Origin: Chrysemys picta bellii
Taxonomy: Eukaryota
Reading direction: 5' to 3'
Assembly (NCBI RefSeq): GCF_011386835.1
Contig: NC_088794.1
Coordinates: 2,976,001-3,040,000 of the forward strand
Length of the DNA: 64,000 bases
Made by a program: the position numbers and the translations under genes. Positions within the stretch are counted from its first letter, which is position 1. Every line of letters begins with the position of its first letter. The notes under the pieces were generated by a model, which had not been told where the DNA came from, did not search any database, and was given only the letters and a program-made list of their open reading frames with translations. Of this stretch, positions 690-60,990 are shown one piece after another.

Positions 690-2330
690 ACTCATGTTTT
701 AAAATCATCACACAAATTAAAGTTGGCTACTCAAGCCTTCTATGAAGCACGACATCTACATCCTTCTTGGTTTCTTGTTATAATTTTGCACAACTCTGTT
801 AATGAACTTCTTGAAAGCAATGCGTTCATCTTTGGTGGTGTCTCGGGTGTCCGGTACTTCAATTCCTTCAATTGAGATGCTCGTTAGTTCATTCACATGA
901 TTAGGCAGAAAGCGACTTCTTTCAGAACACAAAATTCTATTCAGTGATGAAAAAGAACGCTCAGCTGTAGCTGTTGTGACTGGGAGTAGCAAAAGACGAA
1001 TTCCGACTTTTTTCATCCCAGGAAACAGAGCACAGAGATCGGGTCGAGCCACTAGTGATGATAAAAAAGAAGTTGAAGTCAAATCTTCATTCATTCGTTG
1101 TATGATTTTCCACTCTGTGTTCAAATTCTCTATTCTGTCCTGAGCACATGGCAGCCCCATTGCTGGTAGTGCCTCACTCCACTCAACTGTCGATGTTTTA
1201 TAAGACAGGAATCTGTAAAAGCTACGTAGACGTTGAGTAGAATCTAGAAGTTGCTGTTGTAGAGTTTTAAGAATCAAGTCTGTACTTTTTCAGTTGTCTT
1301 AACAAACACTTCTTGTCCTCTTCACTTAAGGATTCAGTATAAATGCCTTCATTAGTCAACTTCTGGACTGAAGTCTTTGCTTCTCCCAGTATGTTTTCAA
1401 TGGATAGCTCTCGGATTGATCCAAACGTAGCTCCTATTGCTGGACAAAGATCTCCTACTGTTGTAGCAGATGCCTGGATGGCCTTGTGTAATGACCCAAG
1501 TGGTTTCCACAGTAGACTTACGAGAGAGAGAGAACGGCAATAGTCTTCTCTGAACATAGCAGCAAAAGGAATCCACCGACCTCACTCCTTAGATCCATCC
1601 CATCTTGGTAGATACTTTCCAAAGCCAGTAATAACGGCTGGAGTCATTTTAAGACAACAGCCAAGGATCGCTCATGAGAAAGCCAGCATGTTTTCCCAGC
1701 TTGGACTAATTTGAACTTCAGTCCCAGCGTATCTTCTCTATTTTCCAAGATATTCAGTCTTTTTGGACTCTTGCTGAAAAAAGAATATAAGGAAGACATT
1801 AAATTTATAGCTTTTTAAATGCCTTTTGAAGAGTCTGCAGCTCGTACTAGCGCTAGGTGGAGTAGATGGCCTCTGCAGTGTGTATAGGAGAGATCAGGGT
1901 TACACTTTTCTCTGAGCTAAGCCTGTACTCCACCATGTCTTCCAGAGAAGTTTGCAGCTCCATCAAATGCACAAGCAGCCATCTGTTTGGGGTCCAATAG
2001 ACAAGCATTTAACTGAAGACAGATAGTGAGCATTTGCTGGTCTTGTTCGGAACCAGTGTTCAACTTCAGGATGAACAAGTGACAATGCACTTAACATTGG
2101 CCTCCAGTTTGTAGTGTGTGGTATCTCTTGCTTAACTAGAAAGTAGGATGCCACAGCCATGTGTGTTCGCATGAACTGTGTTGTGTCTCCAGCATTCTTA
2201 AATCCATGATCCTTTTTCAGATACACGTATTTTATCATACACATGCTTTTGAAGTGTGTATTAATGTTTCAATTTCAATTCAAATTTCCAAACAATCACT
2301 ACATTGGCAAAACTGCATGTAACTAGTCCA
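690..2330 (-). mobile_element. Degraded hAT DNA transposon, ZMYM1-like transposase with C-terminal dimerisation domain
   Basis: ORF 756-1277 contains LLLLPVTTATAERSFSSLNRI, the hAT dimerisation motif. Further in-strand fragments at 1267-1557 and 1963-2244 are separated by stops, frameshifts and a deletion. Confidence 0.85.
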
Positions 2331-3783: not shown

Positions 3784-4032
3784 ATGCAGGCCGGCGGGGG
3801 TGCCGAGGGGGAGCTGGGAGGCGAGGGGGAGCGGGAGCCCCTGAACCCGGAGGCGGCGGACACACTGGGGGTCTCCCCCACCTACCGGGAGTTTGTGCGG
3901 CACAGCTACCTGGAGCTGATGGGTGCCAACCAGCACTCGCTGCACGCCCTCAACTGGCGACGTCTCTACCTCAGCCGGGCTAAGCTTAAGGCCTCGAGTC
4001 GCACCTCAGCCCTGCTCTCCGGCTTCGCCATG
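3784..4032 (+). CDS. ORAI3: CRAC channel subunit ORAI3-like, coding exon 1 (83 codons)
   Basis: MQAGGG...EPLNPE...[51 protein letters not shown] followed by a GTGAGC donor. The N-terminus resembles human ORAI3 (PLNPE...[21 protein letters not shown]). Confidence 0.9.
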
Positions 4033-5729
4033 GTGAGCGGACCCCGGCGTCCGGGTGCCCAGCACCCACTAGGCTCCACTTCCCTCCCAGAGCTGGGGAG
4101 AGAACCCAGGAGTCCTGGCTCCCAGCCCCTCCCTGCTCTGACTCCCCTTCCCTCCCCAGAGATAGAACCCAGGCATCGGGGCACCTAGCCCCCCACCTCA
4201 CCTGCTCTAACCACTGGACCCCACTGCCCTCCCACAGCTGGACATGGAACCCAGGAGTTCTGACTAGCTATAGCGGTGTTGGGGGGGGGGGCGGGTCAGG
4301 GCAGTTAGGAAGCCCCTCTAATCTACATCCCTTACTAGAGTTTAGTACCCAGGGTAGGGCCCAGCCCCAGGGCTGGGGAATAATTCACTGAGGACATGGA
4401 ACCAGGACTCCTGGGTTCCATCCCTGGCTCTGGCAGGGGAGTGGGGTCCAGTGGTTAGAGCGGGGGGGCCAGGAGGACTGTCACACAGGCCCACATCTAC
4501 CCCTCCTCCTCCAGCTAGCCTGGTAACCGGTAACCTCGTTTCCTTCCCCTCAAGGCCAGAGTTGTGGCCACTGCCCACGTGTTGATTGTGGTTAATTGGC
4601 CCCAGGGCAGTGGCATGTGCCAGCGGATGTGACACTGTCTCAAACCTGGCAACAAGATAAGACCTCTCTTCCTGCCCCCCCAGCTCTGCCGGTGCCCCTC
4701 ACTCCTGACCCACAGTCCCCTGCCAGCCCAGCTCTGCCCCCCCCCGCTCTGCCGGTGCCCCTGATCTTTCCCCTTCAAGGCCCTCCTGTCTCTCTGGGAA
4801 GATAATTTTGCTTCCACCCATCCCCAGGCGAAATTCCAGCCCTGGGGATGATCTCACTCCTGTAACCGCAGCAACTGATTAGGATGGAACCTACTGCTGC
4901 AGCCTGGGGATGGGGTCTGGAGCCTCTCCCCTCTAGGGGGCACCAGCTCTTATCCAGCCCCCTGGGTGTGGGTGTTGGTTTGTTGGCCCGTTGCTCTGAC
5001 CCTGTTAATTAGATTGAGGAGGCCTGACTGCCAATTCCCAGCCGTGCCAGCCTGTGCCCAGCCCCCAGTCTGGGAAACACCTGTGCTCCTGATCCCCTCT
5101 AGTAGGGGGCAGCGCTGCCCACACAACCCCTCTCCCAGAGTCGGGGATCGAACGCAGGAGTCCTGGCTCCCCAGTCCCGTGTTCTGGCTTCCTAATTACT
5201 CCCCTCTTGCCCTGGGGTGGGGTTAGATCAATCTGGAGTTGTGACCCCTCTGGCACTGTGAGGGTTAACTGCCCCCTTCCCTTCTGGGGGCCAGGATGAA
5301 GGGCCCAGGATGGCGGATCCCTTACCCCTGCCCACTGCCCCCCCTCTTGGGCTTAATTCCTGGCAATGTCTTCTTCAGGCCCTCTGGCGCTGCCCCATGA
5401 ATGTGACCCCGCCTCTTCTCCCTGGCCCTGCTTTGCCCCTGAGCTGGGCCAGGCTCTGAGACCCACTTTGTGCCCCCTGCCAAGCCCCCCACTCTCCGCA
5501 GCAGTCCGAGCCCCCCCACCCCAACCCTGCCACAAGGGTTAAACGCAAGCTTTATTATGCTGCCCTCCTGCCTCCGTTCCCCTGTCTGAGACTGCCTTAA
5601 ACACAGTGACTGAGCTGTCAGAGCTGGGGAAATATTTGGTGTTTGCTGAGCCCGCCCTGCACCCCAGAGCAGTGGGAAAGGAATTTGGCTCCAGCTGTGA
5701 TGTGTTAAAGGAGTGGGGGAGGGGACACA

Positions 5730-5990
5730 GGGCCTTTCCCCTCTAGGGAAGGCTGGCTTGGATCTGGGCCCAGGGTGAGGACTGGCTGGCTCAGGGGATG
5801 GGGAATGGGACCTGGGGCCTTTCCCCTCTAGGGGGCGCTGGCTCTGATCTGGGCCCAGGGTGGGGACTGGCTGGCTCAGGGGATGGGGAATGGGACCTGG
5901 GGCCTTTCCCCTCTAGGGGGCGCTGGCTCTGATCTGGGCCCAGGGTGGGGACTGGCTGGCTCAGGGGGGTGGGGAATGGGACCTCACACG
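5730..5990. repeat. ~85-bp GC-rich tandem repeat (ggcctttcccctctagggggcgctggctc...), 3 copies; family is dispersed through the window
   Basis: Visible tandem copies; related single copies at ~8860-8990, 15430-15550, 19790-19930, 27040-27200 and 53830-54030. Confidence 0.85.
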
Positions 5991-6032
5991 AGCCAGGAGT
6001 GGGGCTGACGGTGTCTCCGGCGCCCCCTGCAG

Positions 6033-6530
6033 GTGGCGATGGTGGAGGTGCAGCTGGAGGACTATGACTACCCGCCGGGGCTGCTGATCGCCTTCAGTGC
6101 CTGCACGACGGTGCTGGTGGCCGTGCACCTCTTTGCCCTCATGGTCAGCACCTGCATCCTGCCTAACATCGAGGCCGTCAGCAACATCCACAACCTCAAC
6201 TCGGTCAACGAGTCGCCCCACGAGCGCATGCACCGCTACATCGAGCTGGCCTGGGGCTTCTCCACCGCCCTGGGCATCTTCCTCTTCCTCACCGAGGTGG
6301 TGCTCATCTGCTGGGTCAAGTTCATGCCCGTGGCCGGCGGCGGCTGGGACGCCGCCGTGGCCTCCACCGTCATCATGGTGCCGGTGGGGGTGGTGTTTGT
6401 GGTGTTCGCCCTCCACTTCTACCGCTCGCTGGTGAGCCACAAGACCGACCGGCACCAGCAGGAGCTGGAGGAACTCAGCAAGATTAAGTACCAGCTGGAC
6501 GGAGAGGCTACCGCGGTGCAAACTGTGTGA
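6033..6530 (+). CDS. ORAI3: ORAI3-like coding exon 2 (TM1 end to C-terminus, stop at 6528-6530)
   Basis: cctgcag acceptor, phase 0. VAMVEVQL (pore Glu), [38 protein letters not shown]. Joins exon 1 in frame to give 248 aa. Confidence 0.92.
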
Positions 6531-8146
6531 GGCCGGATCCGGCTCCTGACCGCAGGGGGTGCCTGGAGCTGGCCGGTTCCCCCGGCTGCCCCGGGGATGG
6601 CCAGAAGACGTTAGCGGCTCCCCCGAGCGGAGGCTACTTGAGCCAGACAGGAGAGACAGCTGCTGGCTGGGGGCTAATCCACAGCTGGGGTCATTCCCAG
6701 CCATCGTCTCCTCCTGCCTCTGCTGCTTTCGGGCTGGGTTTTCTGTCCCTCGCCACCTCAGCCGTGGGGGAAGTGGGGCTGGTTTGTCCGGCCTGACCAG
6801 GCACTGCCCAGGAGAATCGCTCCCTGTCCCCTCTCCTTCCCGGCCATGCTTCCCCTGCTGAGGCTGTGGTAATGACGCCCAGCCGGCAGCTCGTCCTGGG
6901 GGGTGGGGGGTGCTGTGTGGGGCACACAGGTACAGATCGGGGAAAGTGTAGACACAGATACGGCCAAGCTGGGGTCTGCAGTGGGGCATACGCACAGATC
7001 TGGGGCTCAGCCACCATTCGGGTACAGCAGTCCCGGAGCTGGGGTAGATGGGGTGTGGTGGGGGTTATTCTCAGCCATGTTGCCTCAGCGCTGCCCCCTA
7101 GTGGTCGATCTCGGCATCGACGGCCTCTCCAGCCTTTGGCGGCTATGGGAGTGGGGCGCTTGTCCCTGGGCTGAGAGCCAGTCAACTCATGTCCTACCAA
7201 CCCCTCAGCCCTGTACCGGAGGGCAAGGCCCCGTGTCCCTCTAAGCCAGCCAGTCCCTCTCCCCGGGGCTGGATCGGCACCAGTGCCCTGTGTCCTCTTC
7301 CCCACTGGTCATTAATGACTGACTAGCTGATATAGCGACCTTTGCTCTCTAACTACGGTCAGAGCTCCACTGCAGAGAACAAAACAGTAGCTAGCATTAA
7401 TGTAGGCCCTCTGATAATATGGTCCATTCCCTGTCCCAGCAGAGGACAACACCCCTTGCTAAACCAAAACAAAAGCCAGTTCTGTAGGACCTATAATGTC
7501 TTGTGCTTGGCTTCTATCAAGCAGGAACAGGTACTTAAGCAGAGCAAAACAGACTATATTTTTGTAGGACCTACGATATGTGGCATTGATTGCGGATGGG
7601 AGGGGAGCCCATCTTGCTTGCCGAATCAGTGTTTTTGGTAGGACCTGTAATAATGTGGTGTTGCAGGTCCAGCCAGCTGCTTAACTGAAACAGCCAGCCA
7701 GTGGTCTTTTTTTTTTTTTTTTTTTTTTTTGGGGGGTAGGGCCTATAATATGTTGTCACACATTCAGCCAATGTGCAGGCAAGTAGCTTAATGGAAACAA
7801 ACTGCCAGTGCTTAGTTGGAGGGCCTATAATATTGTGTACTCTGCCCTGCAGGGTGGCGAGCAGAAATGTGTGGTTTAGCTGGAAGGACAGAACCTTTTG
7901 CAAGAGAGCCAGAGACCTTATTAACGTCTGCAGAGCAATTCACAGCCATACTGCAGTGCCTTATAATCACCAGCAGCCTGGTGCTTGGAGGGGAGTGGGG
8001 TCTAGTGGTCAGAGCAGGGGGGTGCCTGGCCCCTCTGATGCCGACAGTGCGATCCCGCACCAAGGATTGTGGCTGGCTCCAGCCCCCTGGGGTCTGCTGG
8101 TGGATTTTCTGGTCTTTTTGTGCCTGTCATTTTTTTGCAGTTTGTA

Positions 8147-15915: not shown

Positions 15916-16432
15916 AACATTCTGTGCTTGAATTTCCAACAATCTGTAAAAGGCAGATATTGGCCACTTGCTGGTATAATTTGTGTTGGAGAAGCACCGG
16001 AAAGCCCCATCCACCAGCCCAGACCCAAGGGGAGCGATCGAGGCCCCCGGTGTGCCGGGTACAACACAAACACAGGCCCTGCCCTGAAGAGCTGCTACTC
16101 TGACGAGACGAAGGGTAGGACAGGAAACAATCTCCACAGAAACATGTGGAGATTTGCCCAAGGTCATCCAGTGATGGCAGAGCCAGGGATAGAACCCAGG
16201 AGTCCTGGCTCCCAGCCCCCTACCCCGATCTAGCCCCCTAGACTCCCCTCCCCTCCTAGAGCTGGGAATTGAAACCAGTCCCCTCTCCAGCTCTAACCAT
16301 TAGGCCCCACTTCTGGAAATTCCCCTCAGCAGAAACCCCCTGTGTGCAATCCCCGTTCTTCCCTGCATGGGTCATTTCTGAAGCATTGTCCATGAAGGTT
16401 CACGCCTGACCTTGAGCTGATGGTTGTTCCAG

Positions 16433-17153
16433 CCCCGCCCCGATGAGATCCGCACGGCGGAGGGGAACCCCACCCTGAACTTGGCCTCCAACTCCCTGGA
16501 CGACCTCTACAGAGGTTGCGTGAAGGCCATGAAACGGCGCCTCCCATCCTTGCTGGAAGAGGAGCTGGAGGAGAACCAGCTCTTCCGTGAGGCGTGGGAC
16601 CAAGCCAAGGAGATGTGGATGCAGATGGAGAACCAAACAATCTTCCCCAAGACATTGAGGGCCCTCTACAGCGTCGCTGTCTTGGCCTACACTTTGGAAG
16701 AGCCACCACTCTATGCGTTGTTCAACGTGGCGACCAGAACGGCATGGAAGAGCCCCCAGGCATATGCCGGCTTTGCCTTCAAGTCCTTGCATTTCCTCCT
16801 GACCCGGGCGGCCGAGAAGCTAGGAGCCAAGGAGCCCAGTTGTGCCAAAGTCTACCGAGGAACCAAGGTGAAGTTCTCCATCGAGGGTTTGTTCCGCTTC
16901 GGCCAGTTCACGTCCACCTCAGAGAAGAGGCAGGAGGCGGAGGAATTTGGATGCACGACTTTCTTCGTGCTGGTCTCGTGCCAGGGGTTCCCGGTGGGGA
17001 ATCTGTCCCGCTTCCCGGGGGAAGAGGAGATGGTGGTGCCGCCCTACGAGATGTTCCGGGTCACCGGGGTCAAGGAGACGCCAAGGAAGAAGATGGTGCA
17101 CGCCAAATCGGTGCGCGTCTGCAGCGACCAGAACTGCGCCTACCTGGGGAAAG
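16433..17153 (+). CDS. Ecto-ADP-ribosyltransferase (ARTC family) copy A, catalytic exon
   Basis: DDLYRGC, FKSLHFLLTRA, VYRG, RFGQFTSTS, FPGEEEMVVPPYE, CSDQNC. Acceptor ttccag, phase-1 donor GTGAGG. Confidence 0.93.
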
Positions 17154-17385
17154 GTGAGGGGGAGGACGCGAGGAGGGACGTGAGCTATGGAAGGCCACCA
17201 GGGAGATAAAAACTAGCCCCTAGGGGGTGACAGCTCAGGTCTGGCCCGGGGGTGGGGTGGGGTGAGGAATAGAACACAGGGCCTTTCCCCCTAGGGGGCG
17301 CCAGCTCCTATCCCACTCCAGGCCAGGGGACTGGCTGGCTTGGAGGGTGGCAGGGAAAATTAATTGTCTGTTTTCTGTTTTCCAG

Positions 17386-22223: not shown

Positions 22224-22405
22224 CTGGAAAATAGGAAAGAGGCAGTTCATTTTCCTTGTCACCCTGAGACACCCCATCCCCTTCCCTGCGGCTGGACTGA
22301 AGCCGGCGCCTCCTAGTGGGGAAAGGCCCCGTGTCTCACTGAGCCAGTTCTTAACCCCCTGGTGGAACTCCATAGCTCACGTCCCTCCTGCCTCCCCATC
22401 CTCAC

Positions 22406-23132
22406 CTTTCCCTGTGTAGGCGCAGTTGTGGTTGCTGCAGACCCCCACCGACTTGGCATAGACAGCCTGCCTCGTCCATGTGCGCTTGATCTCAGTGACC
22501 AGGAACATCTCAGAGGGCAGCACCAACACCTCTTCTTCTTTAGGGAAGGGGGACAGGTCCTGAACCGCATACCCGATGCAGGAAACCAGGATGAATATGG
22601 TCTTTTTGCCGAAATTGGTTGCCACCGTCAAGCTCTTTGAGGTGGAAGTGAACTGGCCAAAGCGGAACAAGCGTCTGTAGGTGACGGAGAACATTACGTC
22701 AGTTCCTCTGTAGACGATGGCACAACTGGGAGTTATCCCCCAGATGTCTTTGGGTGCCCGGGTCAGCAGGAAATGCAAAGCCTTGAAGGGGTAGCTGGCG
22801 TAGGCATCGGGTCCCGTCCAGCCCGTCCTGGTGGCGGTGTCGAAGTCCTTGTACAGAGGCGGGTCTTTTAAGGTGTAGGCCATCACTGCAACGCTGCAGA
22901 AAGCTCTCATCGTGTTGGGGAAGATTAACATATTCTTCTTCCTCATCCACTCCTCCTTGGCCTTGTTCCAAGCCAGGTGGAAGTTCTTGTTCTTGGTCAG
23001 CTCGTTTTTTAACAGGGACAGGAGTTGTTGCCTCATGGCAGGCGTGCAGCCTTCGTACAGGTCATCCACCGAGGAGAAGGCCAAATCGAGCGTGGGGTTT
23101 CCTTCTCCCACGCCGGTCCCGGGGGGGCTGGC
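22406..23132 (-). CDS. Ecto-ADP-ribosyltransferase (ARTC family) copy B, catalytic exon
   Basis: DDLYEGC, FKALHFLLTRA, VYRG, RFGQFTSTS, FPKEEEVLVLPSE, CSNHNC. ctcctag acceptor in frame, GTGAGG donor. Confidence 0.93.
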
Positions 23133-35620: not shown

Positions 35621-37390
35621 CTGGCTGTATTTTAAAGAATCCTTATTGAGGTTGTGTAGAAAGAACAGTAAATATGGCAGGCGACCAGCTTGGCTAAACA
35701 GTGAAATCCTTGCTGATCTTCAACACAAAAAAGAAGCTTACAAGAAGTGGAAGATTGGACAAATGACCAGGGAGGAGTATAAAACTATTGCTCAGGCATG
35801 CAGGAGTGAAATCAGGAAGGCCAAATCACACTTGGAGTTGCAGCTAGCAAGGGATGTTAAGAGTAACAAGAAGGGTTTCTTCAGGTATGTTCGCAACAAC
35901 AAGGTGGTCAGGGAAAGTGTGGGCCCCTTACTGAATGAGGGAGGCAACCTAGTGACCGAGGATGTGGAAAAAGCTAATGTACTCAATGATTTTTTCGCCT
36001 CTGTCTTCACGAACAAGGTCAGCTCCCAGATTCCTGCCCTGGGCAGCACAGTATGGGGAGGAGGTGACCAGCCCTCTGTGGAGAAAGAAGTGGTTCGGGA
36101 CTATTTAGAAAAGCTGGACGAGCACAAGTCCATGGGTGTGCTGCATCCGAGGGTGCTAAAGGAGTTGGCGGATGAGATTGCAGAGCCATTGGCCATTATC
36201 TTTGAAAACTCATGGCGACCGGGGGAGGTCCCGGATGACTGGAAAAAGGCTAATGTAGTGCCCATCTTTAAAAAAGGGAAGGAGCGGGATCCGGGGAACT
36301 ACAGGCCAGTCAGCCCAATCTCAGTCCCTGGAAAAATCATGGAGCAGGTCCTCAAGGAATCAATTCTGAAGCACTTAGAGGAGAGAAAAGTGATCAGGAA
36401 CAGTCAGCATGGATTCACCAAGGGCAAGTCATGCCTGACTAACCTAATTGCCTTCTATGAGGAGATAACTGGCTCTGTGGATGAGGGGAAAGCAGTGGAC
36501 ATGTTATTCCTTGACTTTAGCAAAGCTTTTGATACGGTCTCCCACAATATTCTTGCCAGCAAGTTAAAGAAGTATGGGCTGGATGAATGGACTGTAAGGT
36601 GGATAGAAAGCTGCCTAGATCATTGGGCTCAACGGATAGTGATCAATGGCTCCATGTCTAGTTGGCAGCCGGTATCGGGTGGAGTTCCCCAAGGGTCGGT
36701 CCTGGGGCCAGTTTTGTTCAATATCTTCATGAATGATCTGGAGGATGGCGTGGACTGCACCCTCAGCAAGTTTGCAGATGACACTAAACTAGGAGGCGTG
36801 GTAGATACACTAGAGGGTAGGGACAGGATACACAGGGACCTAGACAAATTAGAGGATTGGGCCAAAAGAAACCTGATGAGGTTCAACAAGGACAAGTGCA
36901 GAGTCCTGCACTTAGGACGGAAGAATCCCATGCACTGCTACAGACTAGGGACCGAATGGCTAGGTAGCAGTTCTGCAGAAAAGGACCTAGGGGTTACAGT
37001 GGACGAGAAGCTGGATATGAGTCAGCAGCGTGCCCTTGTTGCCAAGAAGGCTAACGGCATTTTGGGCTGTATTAGTAGAGGTATTGCCAGCAGATCGAGG
37101 GACGTGATCATTCCCCTCTATTCGACATTGGTGAGGCCTCATCTGGAATACTGTGTCCAGTTTTGGGCCCCACACTACAAGAAGGATGTGGAAAAATTGG
37201 AAAGCATCCAGCGAAGGGCAACAAAAATGATTAGGGGGCTGGAACACATGAGTTATGAGGAGAGGCTGAGGCAACTGGGATTGTTTAGTCTGCAGAAGAG
37301 AAGAATGAGGGGGGATTTGATAGCAGCCTTCAACTACCAGAAGGGGGGTTCCAAAGAGGATGGAGCTCGGCTGTTCTCAGTGGTGGCAGA
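35621..37390 (+). mobile_element. Young 5'-truncated CR1 (PsCR1-like) reverse transcriptase, open up to the gap
   Basis: Uninterrupted ORF of about 580 codons with [26 protein letters not shown] and FADDTKL. Confidence 0.97.
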
Positions 37391-37890
37391 NNNNNNNNNN
37401 NNNNNNNNNNNNNNNNNNNNNNNNNNNNNNNNNNNNNNNNNNNNNNNNNNNNNNNNNNNNNNNNNNNNNNNNNNNNNNNNNNNNNNNNNNNNNNNNNNNN
37501 NNNNNNNNNNNNNNNNNNNNNNNNNNNNNNNNNNNNNNNNNNNNNNNNNNNNNNNNNNNNNNNNNNNNNNNNNNNNNNNNNNNNNNNNNNNNNNNNNNNN
37601 NNNNNNNNNNNNNNNNNNNNNNNNNNNNNNNNNNNNNNNNNNNNNNNNNNNNNNNNNNNNNNNNNNNNNNNNNNNNNNNNNNNNNNNNNNNNNNNNNNNN
37701 NNNNNNNNNNNNNNNNNNNNNNNNNNNNNNNNNNNNNNNNNNNNNNNNNNNNNNNNNNNNNNNNNNNNNNNNNNNNNNNNNNNNNNNNNNNNNNNNNNNN
37801 NNNNNNNNNNNNNNNNNNNNNNNNNNNNNNNNNNNNNNNNNNNNNNNNNNNNNNNNNNNNNNNNNNNNNNNNNNNNNNNNNNNNNNNNNN
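37391..37890. other. Assembly gap (500 N)
   Basis: Run of N. Confidence 1.
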
Positions 37891-49391: not shown

Positions 49392-49758
49392 CTTCATCTC
49401 CTGCTCCATCCCCCCATCTTCCCCATCGTCCATTCTCCATGCAAACCCTCATCTTCCATTGATTTCAAACGTCTTAAAGCCAGAAGGCACCATCTCATCT
49501 GACCTCCCAGATAACCCAGGCAGGAGACGTTCGCCCAGTGACCCCCTGTATTGAACCTAATAACGTGTGTATTGACTAAAGTATCATCCACCAGGAAGAC
49601 CTCCAGTCTTGAGTGGAGTCTGGTGGGTCAGAGCAGGGGGGGCTGAGAGCCAGGACTCCTGGGTTCTCTCCCTAGCTCTGGGAGGAGTGTGGGTAGAGTG
49701 GGAGGGCTGGGAGTCAGGACTCCTGGGTTCGCTAACCCCTCTCTCTTTCCTCCCCCAG

Positions 49759-50025
49759 CGCCCTCCGAGTGCTTCACGGTGAACGGCGCCGATTACCGGG
49801 GGGCCCAGAACCACACATCCCCTGACGGCCGGGGCCAGCCCTGCCTCTACTGGAACCAGACCCAGAAGCACGCCTACAACACGGCCAAGTACCCCAACGG
49901 GGAGTGGGGCCTGGGCAGCCACAACGCCTGCCGGAACCCGGACGGGGATGTCCAGCCCTGGTGCTACGTCCTTGAAACCGAGGAGGGGATCTACTGGAAA
50001 TACTGTGACATCCCCAGCTGCCACA
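49759..50025 (+). CDS. KREMEN2: KREMEN2 kringle exon (267 nt)
   Basis: ECFTVNGADYRG...CLYWNQT...HNACRNPDGDVQPWCYV...IYWKYCDIPSCH; AG/GT, phase 1-1. Confidence 0.95.
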
Positions 50026-50144
50026 GTGAGCGGCGGGGGGGCGCCGGGCCCTGCCGTGGCAGGGAGGGAATGGCAGGGGTGCCGGGCTGCAGCGGGGGTG
50101 GGGGGGGGCTCGTTACACCCTAACCCCGTCTCTCCTTCCCTCAG

Positions 50145-50544: not shown

Positions 50545-50619
50545 GTGAGCGGGGTCTGGGGAGGAGGGAGAAGGGGGGGAATCTAGGGAAGATGGGGCTG
50601 TGCTGCAGGGAGCGGCATG

Positions 50620-50880
50620 GGATCAGCAGGGGGCGCTCTCCCCTGGCGGTCAGGGCTGGCCCCGATGCCCCAGTGCGGCGCTAGGGGGCGCTGTGCTGCA
50701 GGGAGTGGGGGATCAGCAGGGGGCGCTCTCCCCTGGCAGTCAGGGCTGGCCCCGATGCCCCAGTGCGGCGCTAGGGGGCACTGTGCTGCAGGGAGCGGGG
50801 GATCAGCAGGGGGCGCTCTCCCCTGGCGGTCAGGGCTGGCCCCAATGCCCCAGTGCGGCGCTAGGGGGCGCTGTGCTGAA
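50620..50880. repeat. 90-bp tandem repeat, 3 copies, two CTCF-like motifs per unit
   Basis: gatcagcagggggcgc recurs at 50621, 50711 and 50801. Confidence 0.9.
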
Positions 50881-50971
50881 GATCACCATCCTCCCAGATC
50901 ATTAACCTTTTCTGCACCTCAGCCCGGTTGGCCTCCCCTCCACGGCTCACCCCTGCTCTCCCCCCCTCCAG

Positions 50972-51304
50972 TGTCTGTGGGGGCCTGCCAGGGGAACTTC
51001 AGTGCCCCCTCCGGGGTCATCTACTCCCCGGATTTCCCAGACGACTACGGCCCCGACAGTAATTGTTCCTGGGTCCTGCGCCCGCCGGGCTCCAGCGCCG
51101 TGGAGCTCCGCTTCCAGATCTTCGAGATCCGGGACCCCAACGACCGGCTGGAGCTGCGGGATGGGCGCAGCCACCGACTCCTGGCTCAGTTTGACGGGCA
51201 TCACCGCCCCGGCCCCGCCCTCCTCCTCCCCACCGACGTCCTCTTCCTCAGCTTCCGCTCCGACCAGCTCCTGCACGCCCAGGGGTTCGCCGTGGCCTAC
51301 CGGG
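50972..51304 (+). CDS. KREMEN2: KREMEN2 CUB exon (333 nt)
   Basis: SVGACQGNFSAPSGVIYSPDFPDDYGPDSNCSW...FRSD...QGFAVAYR; AG/GT. Confidence 0.95.
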
Positions 51305-51629
51305 GTGAGTGGGAGCTGTTCCTACGGGGACCCCTCGCCCGGCGCTGAGATGCGGCCCCTCTGGGGTGGGGCGGCTGGGTTCATAAGCTGTAGCCACCTC
51401 AGGCTCTTGGATTGGGGGGCGGGGGAGAGCTGCCTTTGAACTCGGATCCTCAGCCCAGGTGCTGTTAATGATGCCCTGGGGGCTGGAGCCGGGGTCTGTA
51501 ATTAGGCGCTTGAACACCTGCATGGGAAGGGGGGCTGGGGCGCGGATGTCACTGCTTGGCAGCAGATATGCGGGAAAATTCCCTCCAGGGAATCCCCTCC
51601 CGTCTAATCCCCCCGGAGAGCGCCAGGGC

Positions 51630-59616: not shown

Positions 59617-59782
59617 ATGGCCTACCTGGGGGGGCCCCGGCTGCTGGACTGGGCCAGCTCCCCCCCCCACCTGCAGTTCAACCGCTTCGTGCTGACGGGC
59701 TACCGGCCGGCGAGCTCGGGCTCGGGCTGCCTGCGGAGCCTCTTCTACCTGCACAACGAGCTGGGCAACATCTACACGCACG
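59617..59782 (+). CDS. PAQR4: PAQR4 coding exon 1 (166 nt); later exons not identified in the window
   Basis: MAYLGGPRLLDWASSPPHLQFNRFVLTGYRPASSGSGCLRSLFYLHNELGNIYTHG with Kozak gccATGG and a GTGAGC donor. Lies next to KREMEN2, as in human. Confidence 0.93.
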
Positions 59783-59789
59783 GTGAGCC

Positions 59790-60990
59790 CGGGCCCCGAT
59801 CCCCCCCGGGCAGTGCCCGATCCCTCCCCTGTACCCCGATCCCCCCCGGCCCCGGGTACCCCGATCCCCCCCGGCCCCGGGTACCCCGATCCCCCCCGGG
59901 CCCGGCCCCCACCGACACCCCGATCCCCCCCCGGGCAGTGCCCGAACCCCCCCGGGTACCCCGATCCCCCCCGGGTACCCCGATCCCCCCCGGGTACCCC
60001 GATCCCCCCTGTACCCCGATCCCCCCCGGGCAGTGCCCGATCCCCCCCGGGTACCCCGATCCCCCCTGTACCCCGATCCCCCCCGGGTACCCCGATCCCC
60101 CCCGGGCAGTGCCCGACCCCCCCTGTACCCCGATCCCCCCCGGGCCCGGCCCCCACCGACACCCCGATCCCCCCCGGGCAGTGCCCGATCCCCCCCCGTA
60201 CTCCGATCCCTCCCGGCCCCCCGATCCCCCGTACCCCGATCCCCCCCAACACCCCGATCCCCCTGGCCCCGGGCCCCCGATCCCCCCCCCGTACCCTGAT
60301 CCCCCCCCCCGGACCCCCTGATCCCCCAGGCCCGGGCACCCCGATCCCCCCCGGCACCCTGATCCCTCCCCAGGCAGTGTCCCATCACCCCCATGTACCC
60401 CTGGCCCCCCCGATCCCGCCCCGGGCACCCATATCCCCACGGCCCGGCCCCCCCAATCCCCTCCGGCACCCCGATCCCACCCCAGGCCCAACCCCTGGCA
60501 GTGCCCGCATGACCCAATCCCCCCCGCCCGAGCCCCCCAGCAGTGCTCCAATGCACCCTGATCCCTCCCGGCACCCCGATCCCGCACCCTGATTTCCCCC
60601 CGGGCCTGATCCCCCCCCCCCCCCCCCCAGGCAGTGGCCGCATCGTCCTATCCCCCCAGGCCCGATTCCCCCGGCAGTGCTCCAATGCGCCCTGATCCGC
60701 CCCCCCGCCCGATCCCCCCAGGCACCCCTATCCCATCCCCTGGTAGTGTCCGCATGTCCTCATCCCCCTTGGCCTGACCCCCCGGGCAGTGCCCCAATGC
60801 ACCCCAATTCCCCTGGCCCCAGGCACCCCAATCCCCCCGGGCAGTGCCCCAATGCGCCCTGATCCACCCCGGCCCCGATCTCCCTGGGTATCCTGATTTC
60901 CCCCCCCCTGAGCACTGCGCCCTGATCCCCCCTGGCCCAATCCCCCCCGACCCCCAGGCACTCTGATTTCCCCCCCTCCTGCACCAGCCA
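59790..60990. repeat. C-rich ~20-bp minisatellite (ccccgatcccccccggg[tac/cagtgc]) in PAQR4 intron 1
   Basis: Visible units; accounts for the Pro/Gly ORFs. Confidence 0.88.

Follow-up and report, generated by a model that had tools for sequence, protein, structure and literature searches.

ORAI3 has been studied as a redox-resistant, "mammal-specific" subunit of calcium release-activated calcium (CRAC) channels that can be activated by 2-aminoethoxydiphenyl borate (2-APB). It has been described as confined to mammals and evolved from ORAI1 (PMC9532584), and a second article likewise treats it as mammal-only and derived from ORAI1 (PMC8174158). The two human proteins differ at the redox site in the third transmembrane segment (TM3), which is occupied by C195 in Orai1 and by G170 in Orai3; oxidised C195 interacts with S239, and the G170C mutant of human ORAI3 is H2O2-sensitive (PMC8347056, summarising Bogeski et al. 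2010 on the last point). The nexus motif is 261LVSHK265 in Orai1, 222LVRHK226 in the second paralogue and 270LVAHK274 in Orai3, and the role of the loop between TM3 and TM4 (loop 3) is still unresolved; in ORAI1 its basic residues vie with Ca2+ at the acidic loop 1 (PMC8347056). The best solved relatives are the structures of Drosophila Orai (PDB 4HKR, 6BBF, 6BBG, 7KR5). Here we compare with these systems an ORAI3 gene of the turtle Chrysemys picta bellii, which lies in a window of 64,000 nucleotides (contig NC_088794.1 of assembly GCF_011386835.1, positions 2,976,001 to 3,040,000 of the forward strand).

With a probability of about 0.85, the locus is a functional ORAI3 gene of an emydid turtle that most likely encodes the pore subunit of a store-operated (CRAC) Ca2+ channel, in which the cysteine of TM3 (Cys176) would be ancestral and the short loop 3 would stem from a deletion in the hard-shelled cryptodires (Durocryptodira). 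The analysis shows the gene structure, the conservation and the trait polarity and supports the orthology; channel function and redox sensitivity are predicted properties.

The gene has two coding exons, which join in phase 0 to encode a protein of 248 amino acids. From exon 1 come the N-terminus, in which the motifs EREPLNPE and TYREFV occur, and the beginning of TM1 together with its conserved N-terminal extension; the 165 codons of exon 2 encode the remainder of TM1, TM2 to TM4 and the C-terminal coiled coil, and their match to Pfam family PF07856 (Orai-1) scores 179 bits against a cut-off of 25, which assigns the protein to this family. The protein encoded by the joined exons has the same sequence as the RefSeq entry "protein orai-3" for Chrysemys picta bellii/Malaclemys terrapin (P0212), differs from the ORAI3 of Emys orbicularis at two residues, and is 93.5% identical to that of the side-necked turtle Pelusios and 88.7% identical to that of Anolis. 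The phase-0 junction after SGFAM recurs in Emys, Anolis and Podarcis, and all three have kept the two-exon structure. The gene is already annotated and is an ordinary member of a known family; because ORAI3 is a conserved gene, chance likeness is not an issue. It is under purifying selection, the ratio of nonsynonymous to synonymous substitution rates (dN/dS), calculated for 229 codons that do not include residues 147-165, being 0.05 in comparison with Emys and 0.10 in comparison with both Anolis and Podarcis.

The known pore and gating residues are all in place. Counterparts are present of the selectivity-filter glutamate E106 of ORAI1 (Glu88 in the turtle), of R91, of the glycine hinge G98, of the valine gate V102, of H134 in TM2, of P245 in TM4 and of the C-terminal leucine pair (ELEEL), whose ORAI1 equivalents L273 and L276 in the coiled coil bind STIM1, and the TM1 stretch is identical to that of the other vertebrate ORAI sequences compared. 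As the TM1 helix with Glu88, the TM2 histidine, the TM4 proline, the nexus and the C-terminal Leu-x-x-Leu helix show no change, the protein would be expected to form a hexameric, STIM-gated, Ca2+-selective channel. Furthermore, both members of the redox pair are present, Cys176 at the position of C195 and its TM4 partner Ser194 at the position of S239, so that inhibition by H2O2 is predicted, as in ORAI1 and in human ORAI3 G170C and unlike in wild-type human ORAI3; by analogy with these proteins, oxidant sensitivity of the turtle ORAI3 can reasonably be inferred. The G170C protein resembles the turtle ORAI3 in carrying the redox-site cysteine in an ORAI3 backbone (PMC8347056), but it was made in the laboratory by a point mutation and retains the long loop 3 of human ORAI3, whereas the turtle protein is a natural one with further differences.

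Mammalian ORAI3 (295 amino acids in human) was compared through the gibbon protein (P0138), which is 78% identical to the turtle protein over the aligned positions, has an identical TM1 pore helix and has the PLNPE and TYREFV motifs in common with it; in addition, both lack an N-glycosylation sequon in loop 3. They differ in Cys176 instead of Gly170, in LVSHK instead of LVAHK, in a loop 1 that is one residue shorter in the turtle, in a loop 3 that lacks 60 residues including the two cysteines of the mammalian loop, in a longer, ORAI2-like C-terminus of the turtle protein, and in the gene neighbours. Human ORAI1 is a separate paralogue that resembles the turtle ORAI3 in the cysteine at C195 with its Ser239 partner, in LVSHK, in the three acidic residues of loop 1 and in the pore and gating residues; the turtle protein lacks its Pro/Arg-rich N-terminal extension, and its loop 3 is 26 residues shorter and without an N223-type glycosylation site. 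Drosophila Orai, the product of an invertebrate single-copy gene, matches residues 47-239 with an E-value of 2e-72 and has a native minimal TM3-TM4 connection, the cysteine (in ILCWVKF) and LVSHK. Its connection (YDLSPPAAW) is even three residues shorter than that of the turtle and its loop 1 is one residue longer.

The original prediction, made from the DNA of this locus alone, had singled out four features of exon 2, namely a five-residue loop 3, the ORAI1-type cysteine, LVSHK and a shortened acidic loop 1; all four are present where it placed them, and the motifs that it quoted occur in the translation. The cysteine at the position of ORAI1 C195 and the LVSHK nexus, opposed to glycine and LVAHK in human ORAI3, agree both with the sequences compared here and with the literature (PMC8347056). 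Loop 1 is indeed one residue shorter (EDYDYPPG) than in primate ORAI1 (DADHDYPPG) and gibbon ORAI3 (ESDHEYPPG).

With the anchors used for that count (WVKFMP and WDAA), the loop 3 insert comprises 5 residues in Chrysemys, 14-21 in side-necked and soft-shelled turtles, 29-36 in squamates and 61-86 in mammals, and the other ORAI proteins range from 14 to 86 residues. A longer measure, from WVKF to the ST.IMVP motif of TM4, gives 12-13 residues for the ORAI3 of durocryptodiran turtles, 22 for Pelusios, 23 for Pelodiscus, 29 for Carettochelys, 37-44 for squamates, 29-34 for amphibians, 22-32 for sturgeon and paddlefish and 69-94 for mammals, as well as 30 and 29 for the ORAI3-like proteins of lungfish and coelacanth; the corresponding stretches of ORAI1 and ORAI2 have 23-42 and 22-30 residues, respectively. 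The turtle has 13 residues by this measure and the gibbon (295 amino acids) has 73, a difference of 60, in accordance with the claim that the human-type loop is much longer.

The short loop 3 was found in seven families of hard-shelled cryptodires, represented by Emydidae, Geoemydidae, Testudinidae, Platysternon, Cheloniidae, Dermochelys and Chelydra. The common pattern MPV[GA][GR]GG[WR]DA occurs in Emys, Chrysemys/Malaclemys, Mauremys reevesii, M. mutica, Pangshura, Gopherus, Chelonoidis, Platysternon, Cheloniidae, Dermochelys and Chelydra, and the TM3-TM4 stretch of Platysternon is one residue shorter than that of the other durocryptodires. Among 331 parsed vertebrate ORAI sequences, comparably short stretches (10-16 residues) occur elsewhere only in a handful of gene models, either Ensembl or de novo, which may be annotation artefacts. 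Because the short loop is confined to Durocryptodira and the other groups have longer ones, parsimony argues for one late deletion. By the simplest history, about 9-10 residues were lost once, in frame, on the stem of Durocryptodira, and the short form has been kept since; when the middle part is taken out of the Pelodiscus sequence MPVGR-PTNSSTHARG-AGWD, the remainder approximates the sea-turtle form MPVGRGGWD.

Several further variants of loop 3 were observed. In all squamate ORAI3 loops (P0006, P0009, P0011, P0012, P0016, P0019, P0021, P0028), a K/Q-C-C pair is conserved and an N-x-T sequon is present, and mammalian ORAI3 loops contain two spaced cysteines; durocryptodiran turtles have lost both the cysteines and the sequon. 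Mammalian ORAI3 models termed "isoform X2" or "X4" (P0090, P0127, P0141, P0143, P0146; 243-253 amino acids) skip most of loop 3 within the exon, for example in Ochotona, where X4 has 21 residues and the main form 76. This suggests that the mammalian stretch can be removed as an internal intron; if these isoforms are real, mammals also make a short-loop ORAI3. The Ensembl model of Naja naja (P0004) has a stretch of 16 residues, compared to 37 in Candoia, Pantherophis and Thamnophis; its short loop is probably due to an intron introduced by annotation, which calls for caution with short-loop models that come from single pipelines.

The other three features have different histories. At the TM3 site, 268 of the 331 parsed sequences have cysteine and 63 have glycine. 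Every one of the 63 glycine sequences is a mammalian ORAI3, with platypus, echidna and marsupials included, while all 268 others, like fly Orai, have cysteine. Judged from this distribution, Cys176 represents the ancestral ORAI state, which would have been changed to glycine in the mammalian stem lineage. Gly170, LVAHK and a long loop 3 were found in every mammal sampled (platypus, echidna and marsupials again among them) but not in any non-mammal, and therefore they were acquired later, in mammals, as the original prediction had proposed. With Cys, LVSHK and 13 residues in place of Gly170, LVAHK and a loop 3 of more than 60 residues, the window protein has none of these hallmarks, which are characters of the mammalian branch and not criteria for membership of the ORAI3 orthology group.

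The nexus is LVAHK in the ORAI3 of all mammals. It is LVGHK in squamates, amphibians, sturgeons and Carettochelys and LLGHK in lungfish, so that most non-mammalian ORAI3 proteins have glycine at its third position, and it is LVSHK in the turtles other than Carettochelys, in the coelacanth, in ORAI1 and in fly Orai. Since the turtle serine codon (AGC) is one transition away from a glycine codon (GGC), retention and reversal are indistinguishable, and the polarity of LVSHK is ambiguous: Ser218 was either retained or arose in turtles by a single-base reversal from glycine. The four-residue form of loop 1 (EDYD or EKYD) is found in all squamate ORAI3 proteins and in the turtles except Pelodiscus (DDKYDYSRE), and every other group has five residues, a pattern in which the one-residue shortening is best read as a derived state common to squamates and most turtles.

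It follows from these polarities how the more far-reaching claim of an "ancestral-state ORAI3" has to be modified. If the turtle protein were a minimal ancestral ORAI3, the short loop 3, the cysteine, LVSHK and the short loop 1 would all be original and mammals would have added the rest. The ancestral cysteine, the derived state of the mammalian glycine, alanine and long loop, and the joint presence of a short loop, Cys and LVSHK in fly Orai speak for this possibility. Nevertheless, it has only a small probability, because the short loop is found only in Durocryptodira, whereas Pleurodira, Trionychia, squamates, amphibians, lungfish, coelacanth and chondrosteans have 22-44 residues between WVKF and ST.IMVP, loop 1 is shortened only in squamates and most turtles, and most non-mammalian ORAI3 proteins have LVGHK. 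The alignment with other turtles and squamates that had been proposed as a check thus turned out against an ancestral short loop, since Pelusios, Pelodiscus, Carettochelys and squamates have longer ones. The ancestral label remains appropriate for the cysteine; it does not apply to loop 3 or to loop 1, and the serine of LVSHK is not clearly a retained state.

The term "mosaic", which implied an exchange with ORAI1, is not needed either. Gene conversion with ORAI1 was rejected, as every ORAI1-type state of the turtle protein was found in other non-mammalian ORAI3 proteins or in fly Orai. The protein is a mix of retained and lineage-specific states, and neither an ORAI1 mosaic nor a wholesale ancestral form. 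The description as a "natural loop-deletion mutant" claims more novelty than is warranted: Drosophila Orai has an even shorter connection with the same Cys and LVSHK, and as the best structurally characterised CRAC channel has a minimal loop 3, the turtle loop is less surprising.

That a non-mammal has an ORAI3 orthologue, as the original prediction had assumed, is supported by similarity searches, trees and gene neighbourhoods. With a mammalian ORAI3 as query, turtle and squamate ORAI3 (about 1e-111 to 1e-107) come directly after the mammalian sequences, and ORAI2 and ORAI1 match at about 1e-100 or more weakly. In addition, turtles carry a separate ORAI1 (P0273, P0285), which is 74-76% identical to the window protein. 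In a tree without ORAI1, the mammalian, turtle and squamate ORAI3 proteins form a clade (support 97/94) with a long mammalian stem (1.78), and the ORAI3-like genes follow the species tree. The paddlefish ORAI3-like gene lies between a zf-CXXC/PHD/F-box/LRR gene of 755 amino acids, which is of the FBXL19 type, and a gene of 2108 amino acids of the SETD1A type (its RRM exon is closer to SETD1A, at 2.8e-49, than to SETD1B, at 2.8e-38), and a zf-CXXC/PHD/F-box/LRR gene, again FBXL19-type, lies upstream of the platypus ORAI3. A syntaxin gene of 288 amino acids is found 8 kb downstream of the Huso ORAI3, which fits the position of STX1B near ORAI3 in human. Mammalian and turtle ORAI3 are very probably orthologous, judged by best-match ranking, by the ORAI1-free phylogeny and by the microsynteny of fish and monotremes.

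Several observations weigh against this view of the gene. In a sparse tree with five ORAI1 sequences, mammalian ORAI3 joins ORAI1 with support 100/99, and a clade of mammalian and sauropsid ORAI3 is marginally rejected by the approximately unbiased (AU) test (p-AU 0.044). The ORAI trees have no invertebrate outgroup. Neither FBXL19 nor SETD1A was found in the window, which covers 3.7 kb upstream and 57 kb downstream of ORAI3, or within 10 kb of the ORAI3 genes of Emys, Anolis and Podarcis. The turtle gene is preceded by hAT-like and repetitive sequence, and the downstream part of the window contains two ADP-ribosyltransferase (ART) genes, a reverse transcriptase of a long interspersed nuclear element (LINE), KREMEN-like Kringle and CUB exons and a PAQR4-like first exon instead. 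A last point of this kind concerns function: loops 1 and 3 form the outer vestibule of ORAI1, and because the turtle channel is devoid of the basic loop 3 residues, it could differ in permeation or pharmacology, and may do so in ways unpredictable from the sequence.

The phylogenetic and positional observations would be in line with a mis-assigned paralogue, in which case the ORAI3 of mammals would have arisen by a duplication of ORAI1 specific to them, and the turtle gene would belong to a third or ORAI2-like lineage lost in mammals. The sparse tree, the microsynteny of the turtle gene, which is unlike that of mammals, and the fact that some records name such genes orai-2-like all favour a paralogue. 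However, when 18 ORAI1 sequences are included, ranging from fish to mammals, the join of ORAI1 and ORAI3 collapses to a polytomy, and holding all ORAI3 and ORAI3-like proteins together costs only 1.42 log-likelihood units and is not rejected (p-AU 0.465). In this denser tree, ORAI1 is placed on a stem of length 2.18 inside the amniote ORAI3 region, which is not a real position because fish have ORAI1. The recovery of the amniote clade without ORAI1 and the length of the mammalian stem are typical of long-branch attraction, and in view of the denser and the ORAI1-free trees the join in the sparse tree was treated as such. The best-match ranking favours the sauropsid ORAI3 proteins, the neighbours in paddlefish are of the same types as those of mammalian ORAI3, and platypus has the FBXL19-type neighbour. 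Furthermore, the window carries KREMEN-like and PAQR4-like exons, whose human counterparts KREMEN2 and PAQR4 are neighbours on 16p13.3; human ORAI3 also lies on 16p. A mis-assigned paralogue is thus quite unlikely, and the turtle gene is very probably ORAI3.

We conclude, in disagreement with current reviews, that ORAI3 is older than the mammals; literature searches that combined ORAI3 with reptiles, synteny or non-mammalian taxa returned nothing relevant. It is probable that ORAI3 is an old paralogue of at least bony-vertebrate age, that its ancestral form was ORAI1-like, Cys-bearing and presumably H2O2-sensitive, and that the redox-insensitive, long-looped form arose as an innovation on the mammalian stem by the change of Cys to Gly, of the nexus to Ala and by the expansion of loop 3. 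The published grouping of ORAI1 and ORAI3 would then be a long-branch artefact. The gene would have been retained in paddlefish (together with FBXL19 and SETD1A), sturgeons, coelacanth, lungfish, salamanders, caecilians, squamates and turtles, among which the Durocryptodira would have cut loop 3 down to a fly-like minimum, and it would be missing, apparently, from chicken, Xenopus and zebrafish. The 120 top matches contained turtles, squamates, caecilians, salamanders, lungfish, coelacanth and chondrosteans and no ORAI3 of birds, crocodilians, frogs or teleosts, which is not proof of loss. If the gene was lost from chicken, Xenopus and zebrafish, this would explain why ORAI3 has been thought to be mammal-specific.

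It is hardly credible that loop 3 is longer in the real gene and that the stretch was collapsed or deleted in the assembly or annotation of the window. The locus is GC-rich (58-66%) and repeat-rich, and two N gaps are present elsewhere in the window, features that could give rise to such an artefact. However, the stretch of 12-13 residues is carried by the independent assemblies of at least 12 turtle species. Two Logan contigs (995 and 2451 bp) from a Mauremys-like turtle contain the coding sequence of both exons and therefore represent spliced complementary DNA (cDNA). Moreover, all 105 sampled 31-mers of positions 6033-7000 are present in five runs from two studies, none of them marked as the source, and seven further runs from other studies contain 91-93% of them. 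The reading frame is intact, and the dN/dS values are low (0.05-0.10). An assembly deletion of loop 3 is excluded for practical purposes by the assemblies of other turtles, the Logan contigs and the 31-mers of the independent runs. A decaying or unexpressed relic, which might be suspected because birds, crocodilians, frogs and teleosts, judged from the top matches listed, seem to lack ORAI3, so that the gene would be dispensable in some lineages, can be dismissed with similar assurance in view of the intact open reading frame (ORF) with canonical splice sites, the same low dN/dS, the conservation of all pore and gating residues and the spliced cDNA contigs of a related turtle.

The value of the turtle gene lies in a natural series of variants and in the evidence against a "mammal-specific ORAI3"; nothing points to a new mechanism, and it was already known from Drosophila Orai that a short loop 3 is compatible with function. 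If ORAI3 is indeed older than mammals, its redox insensitivity is a mammalian novelty. The non-mammalian ORAI3 proteins form a graded series of loop 3 inserts (5, 14-21 and 29-36 residues, compared to 61-86 in mammals), all members of which have the sensor cysteine, and chimeras within this series could separate the effects of loop 3, of the Cys/Gly exchange and of the nexus on redox inhibition, permeation and drug action.

The positions of the ORAI3 parts and of the other features of the window are compiled in Table 1.

Table 1. Features of the ORAI3 locus and its surroundings, in positions of the window
Feature	Position	Strand	Remarks
hAT-transposase-derived ORF upstream of ORAI3	756-1277	-	hAT dimerisation domain 1.9e-07
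ORAI3 exon 1, coding part, Met1-Met83	3784..4032	+	ATG 3784, GT donor 4033 (GTGAGC), Pfam Orai-1 3e-11
Single intron of ORAI3	4033..6032	+	2,000 bp, GT..AG, phase 0
ORAI3 exon 2, coding part, Val84-Val248 and TGA	6033..6530	+	CAG acceptor, Pfam Orai-1 6.4e-53
Glu88 in MVEVQL, counterpart of ORAI1 E106	6045..6047	+	aligned with Drosophila Orai pore helix
Extracellular loop 1 EDYDYPPG, three acidic residues	6057..6080	+	ORAI1, ORAI2 and mammalian ORAI3 have one residue more
VLICWVKF, containing Cys176	6300-6323	+	
Cys176, corresponding to ORAI1 C195 and human ORAI3 G170, at the outer end of TM3	6309..6311	+	
TM3-TM4 connection MPVAGGGWD	6324..6350	+	variable part VAGGG, 6330-6344
Ser194 in TM4, counterpart of ORAI1 S239	6363..6365	+	
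Nexus/hinge LVSHK, Leu216-Lys220	6429..6443	+	
C-terminal helix with both leucines, counterparts of ORAI1 L273/L276	6456..6497	+	predicted function, from ORAI1-3
ART ORF, single-exon NAD:arginine ADP-ribosyltransferase	16424-17209	+	convergent with the second ART ORF; Pfam ART 3.9e-60
ART ORF, single-exon NAD:arginine ADP-ribosyltransferase	22377-23111	-	Pfam ART 4.3e-53
LINE-type reverse-transcriptase ORF	35646-37390	+	RVT_1 3.9e-35; cut by N gap 37391-37890
Kringle exon	49689-50120	+	3.2e-18; on one strand with the CUB exon, as in KREMEN
CUB exon	50617-51345	+	3.2e-17
PAQR4-like first exon	59617-59790	+	about 8 kb beyond the CUB exon; no Pfam match, putative name

Within the ORAI3 intron, a unit of 85 bp is repeated 3.0 times with 95% matches at 5730-5984, about 50 bp upstream of the acceptor. 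The ORAI1 isoforms X2 (P0273) and X1 (P0285) of Trachemys differ throughout loops 1 and 3 (EPTHVYPPG and LPLKRHPL... in the one, ERDYPYPPG and LPQGTPRI... in the other; also P0295, P0297, P0278), as would be expected of a duplicated second exon or of two tandem genes and not of ordinary splicing.

The flanks of 10 kb around the ORAI3 genes of Emys, Anolis and Podarcis contain no called neighbour gene, and all ORFs found upstream of the Emys gene are of hAT-like or repeat type. One of these (Emys L001, 6456-7364, minus strand) is a longer ORF of 302 amino acids that matches the hAT ORF of the window in sequence. The hAT ORF upstream of ORAI3 in both turtles would represent either an old shared insertion or a domesticated copy.

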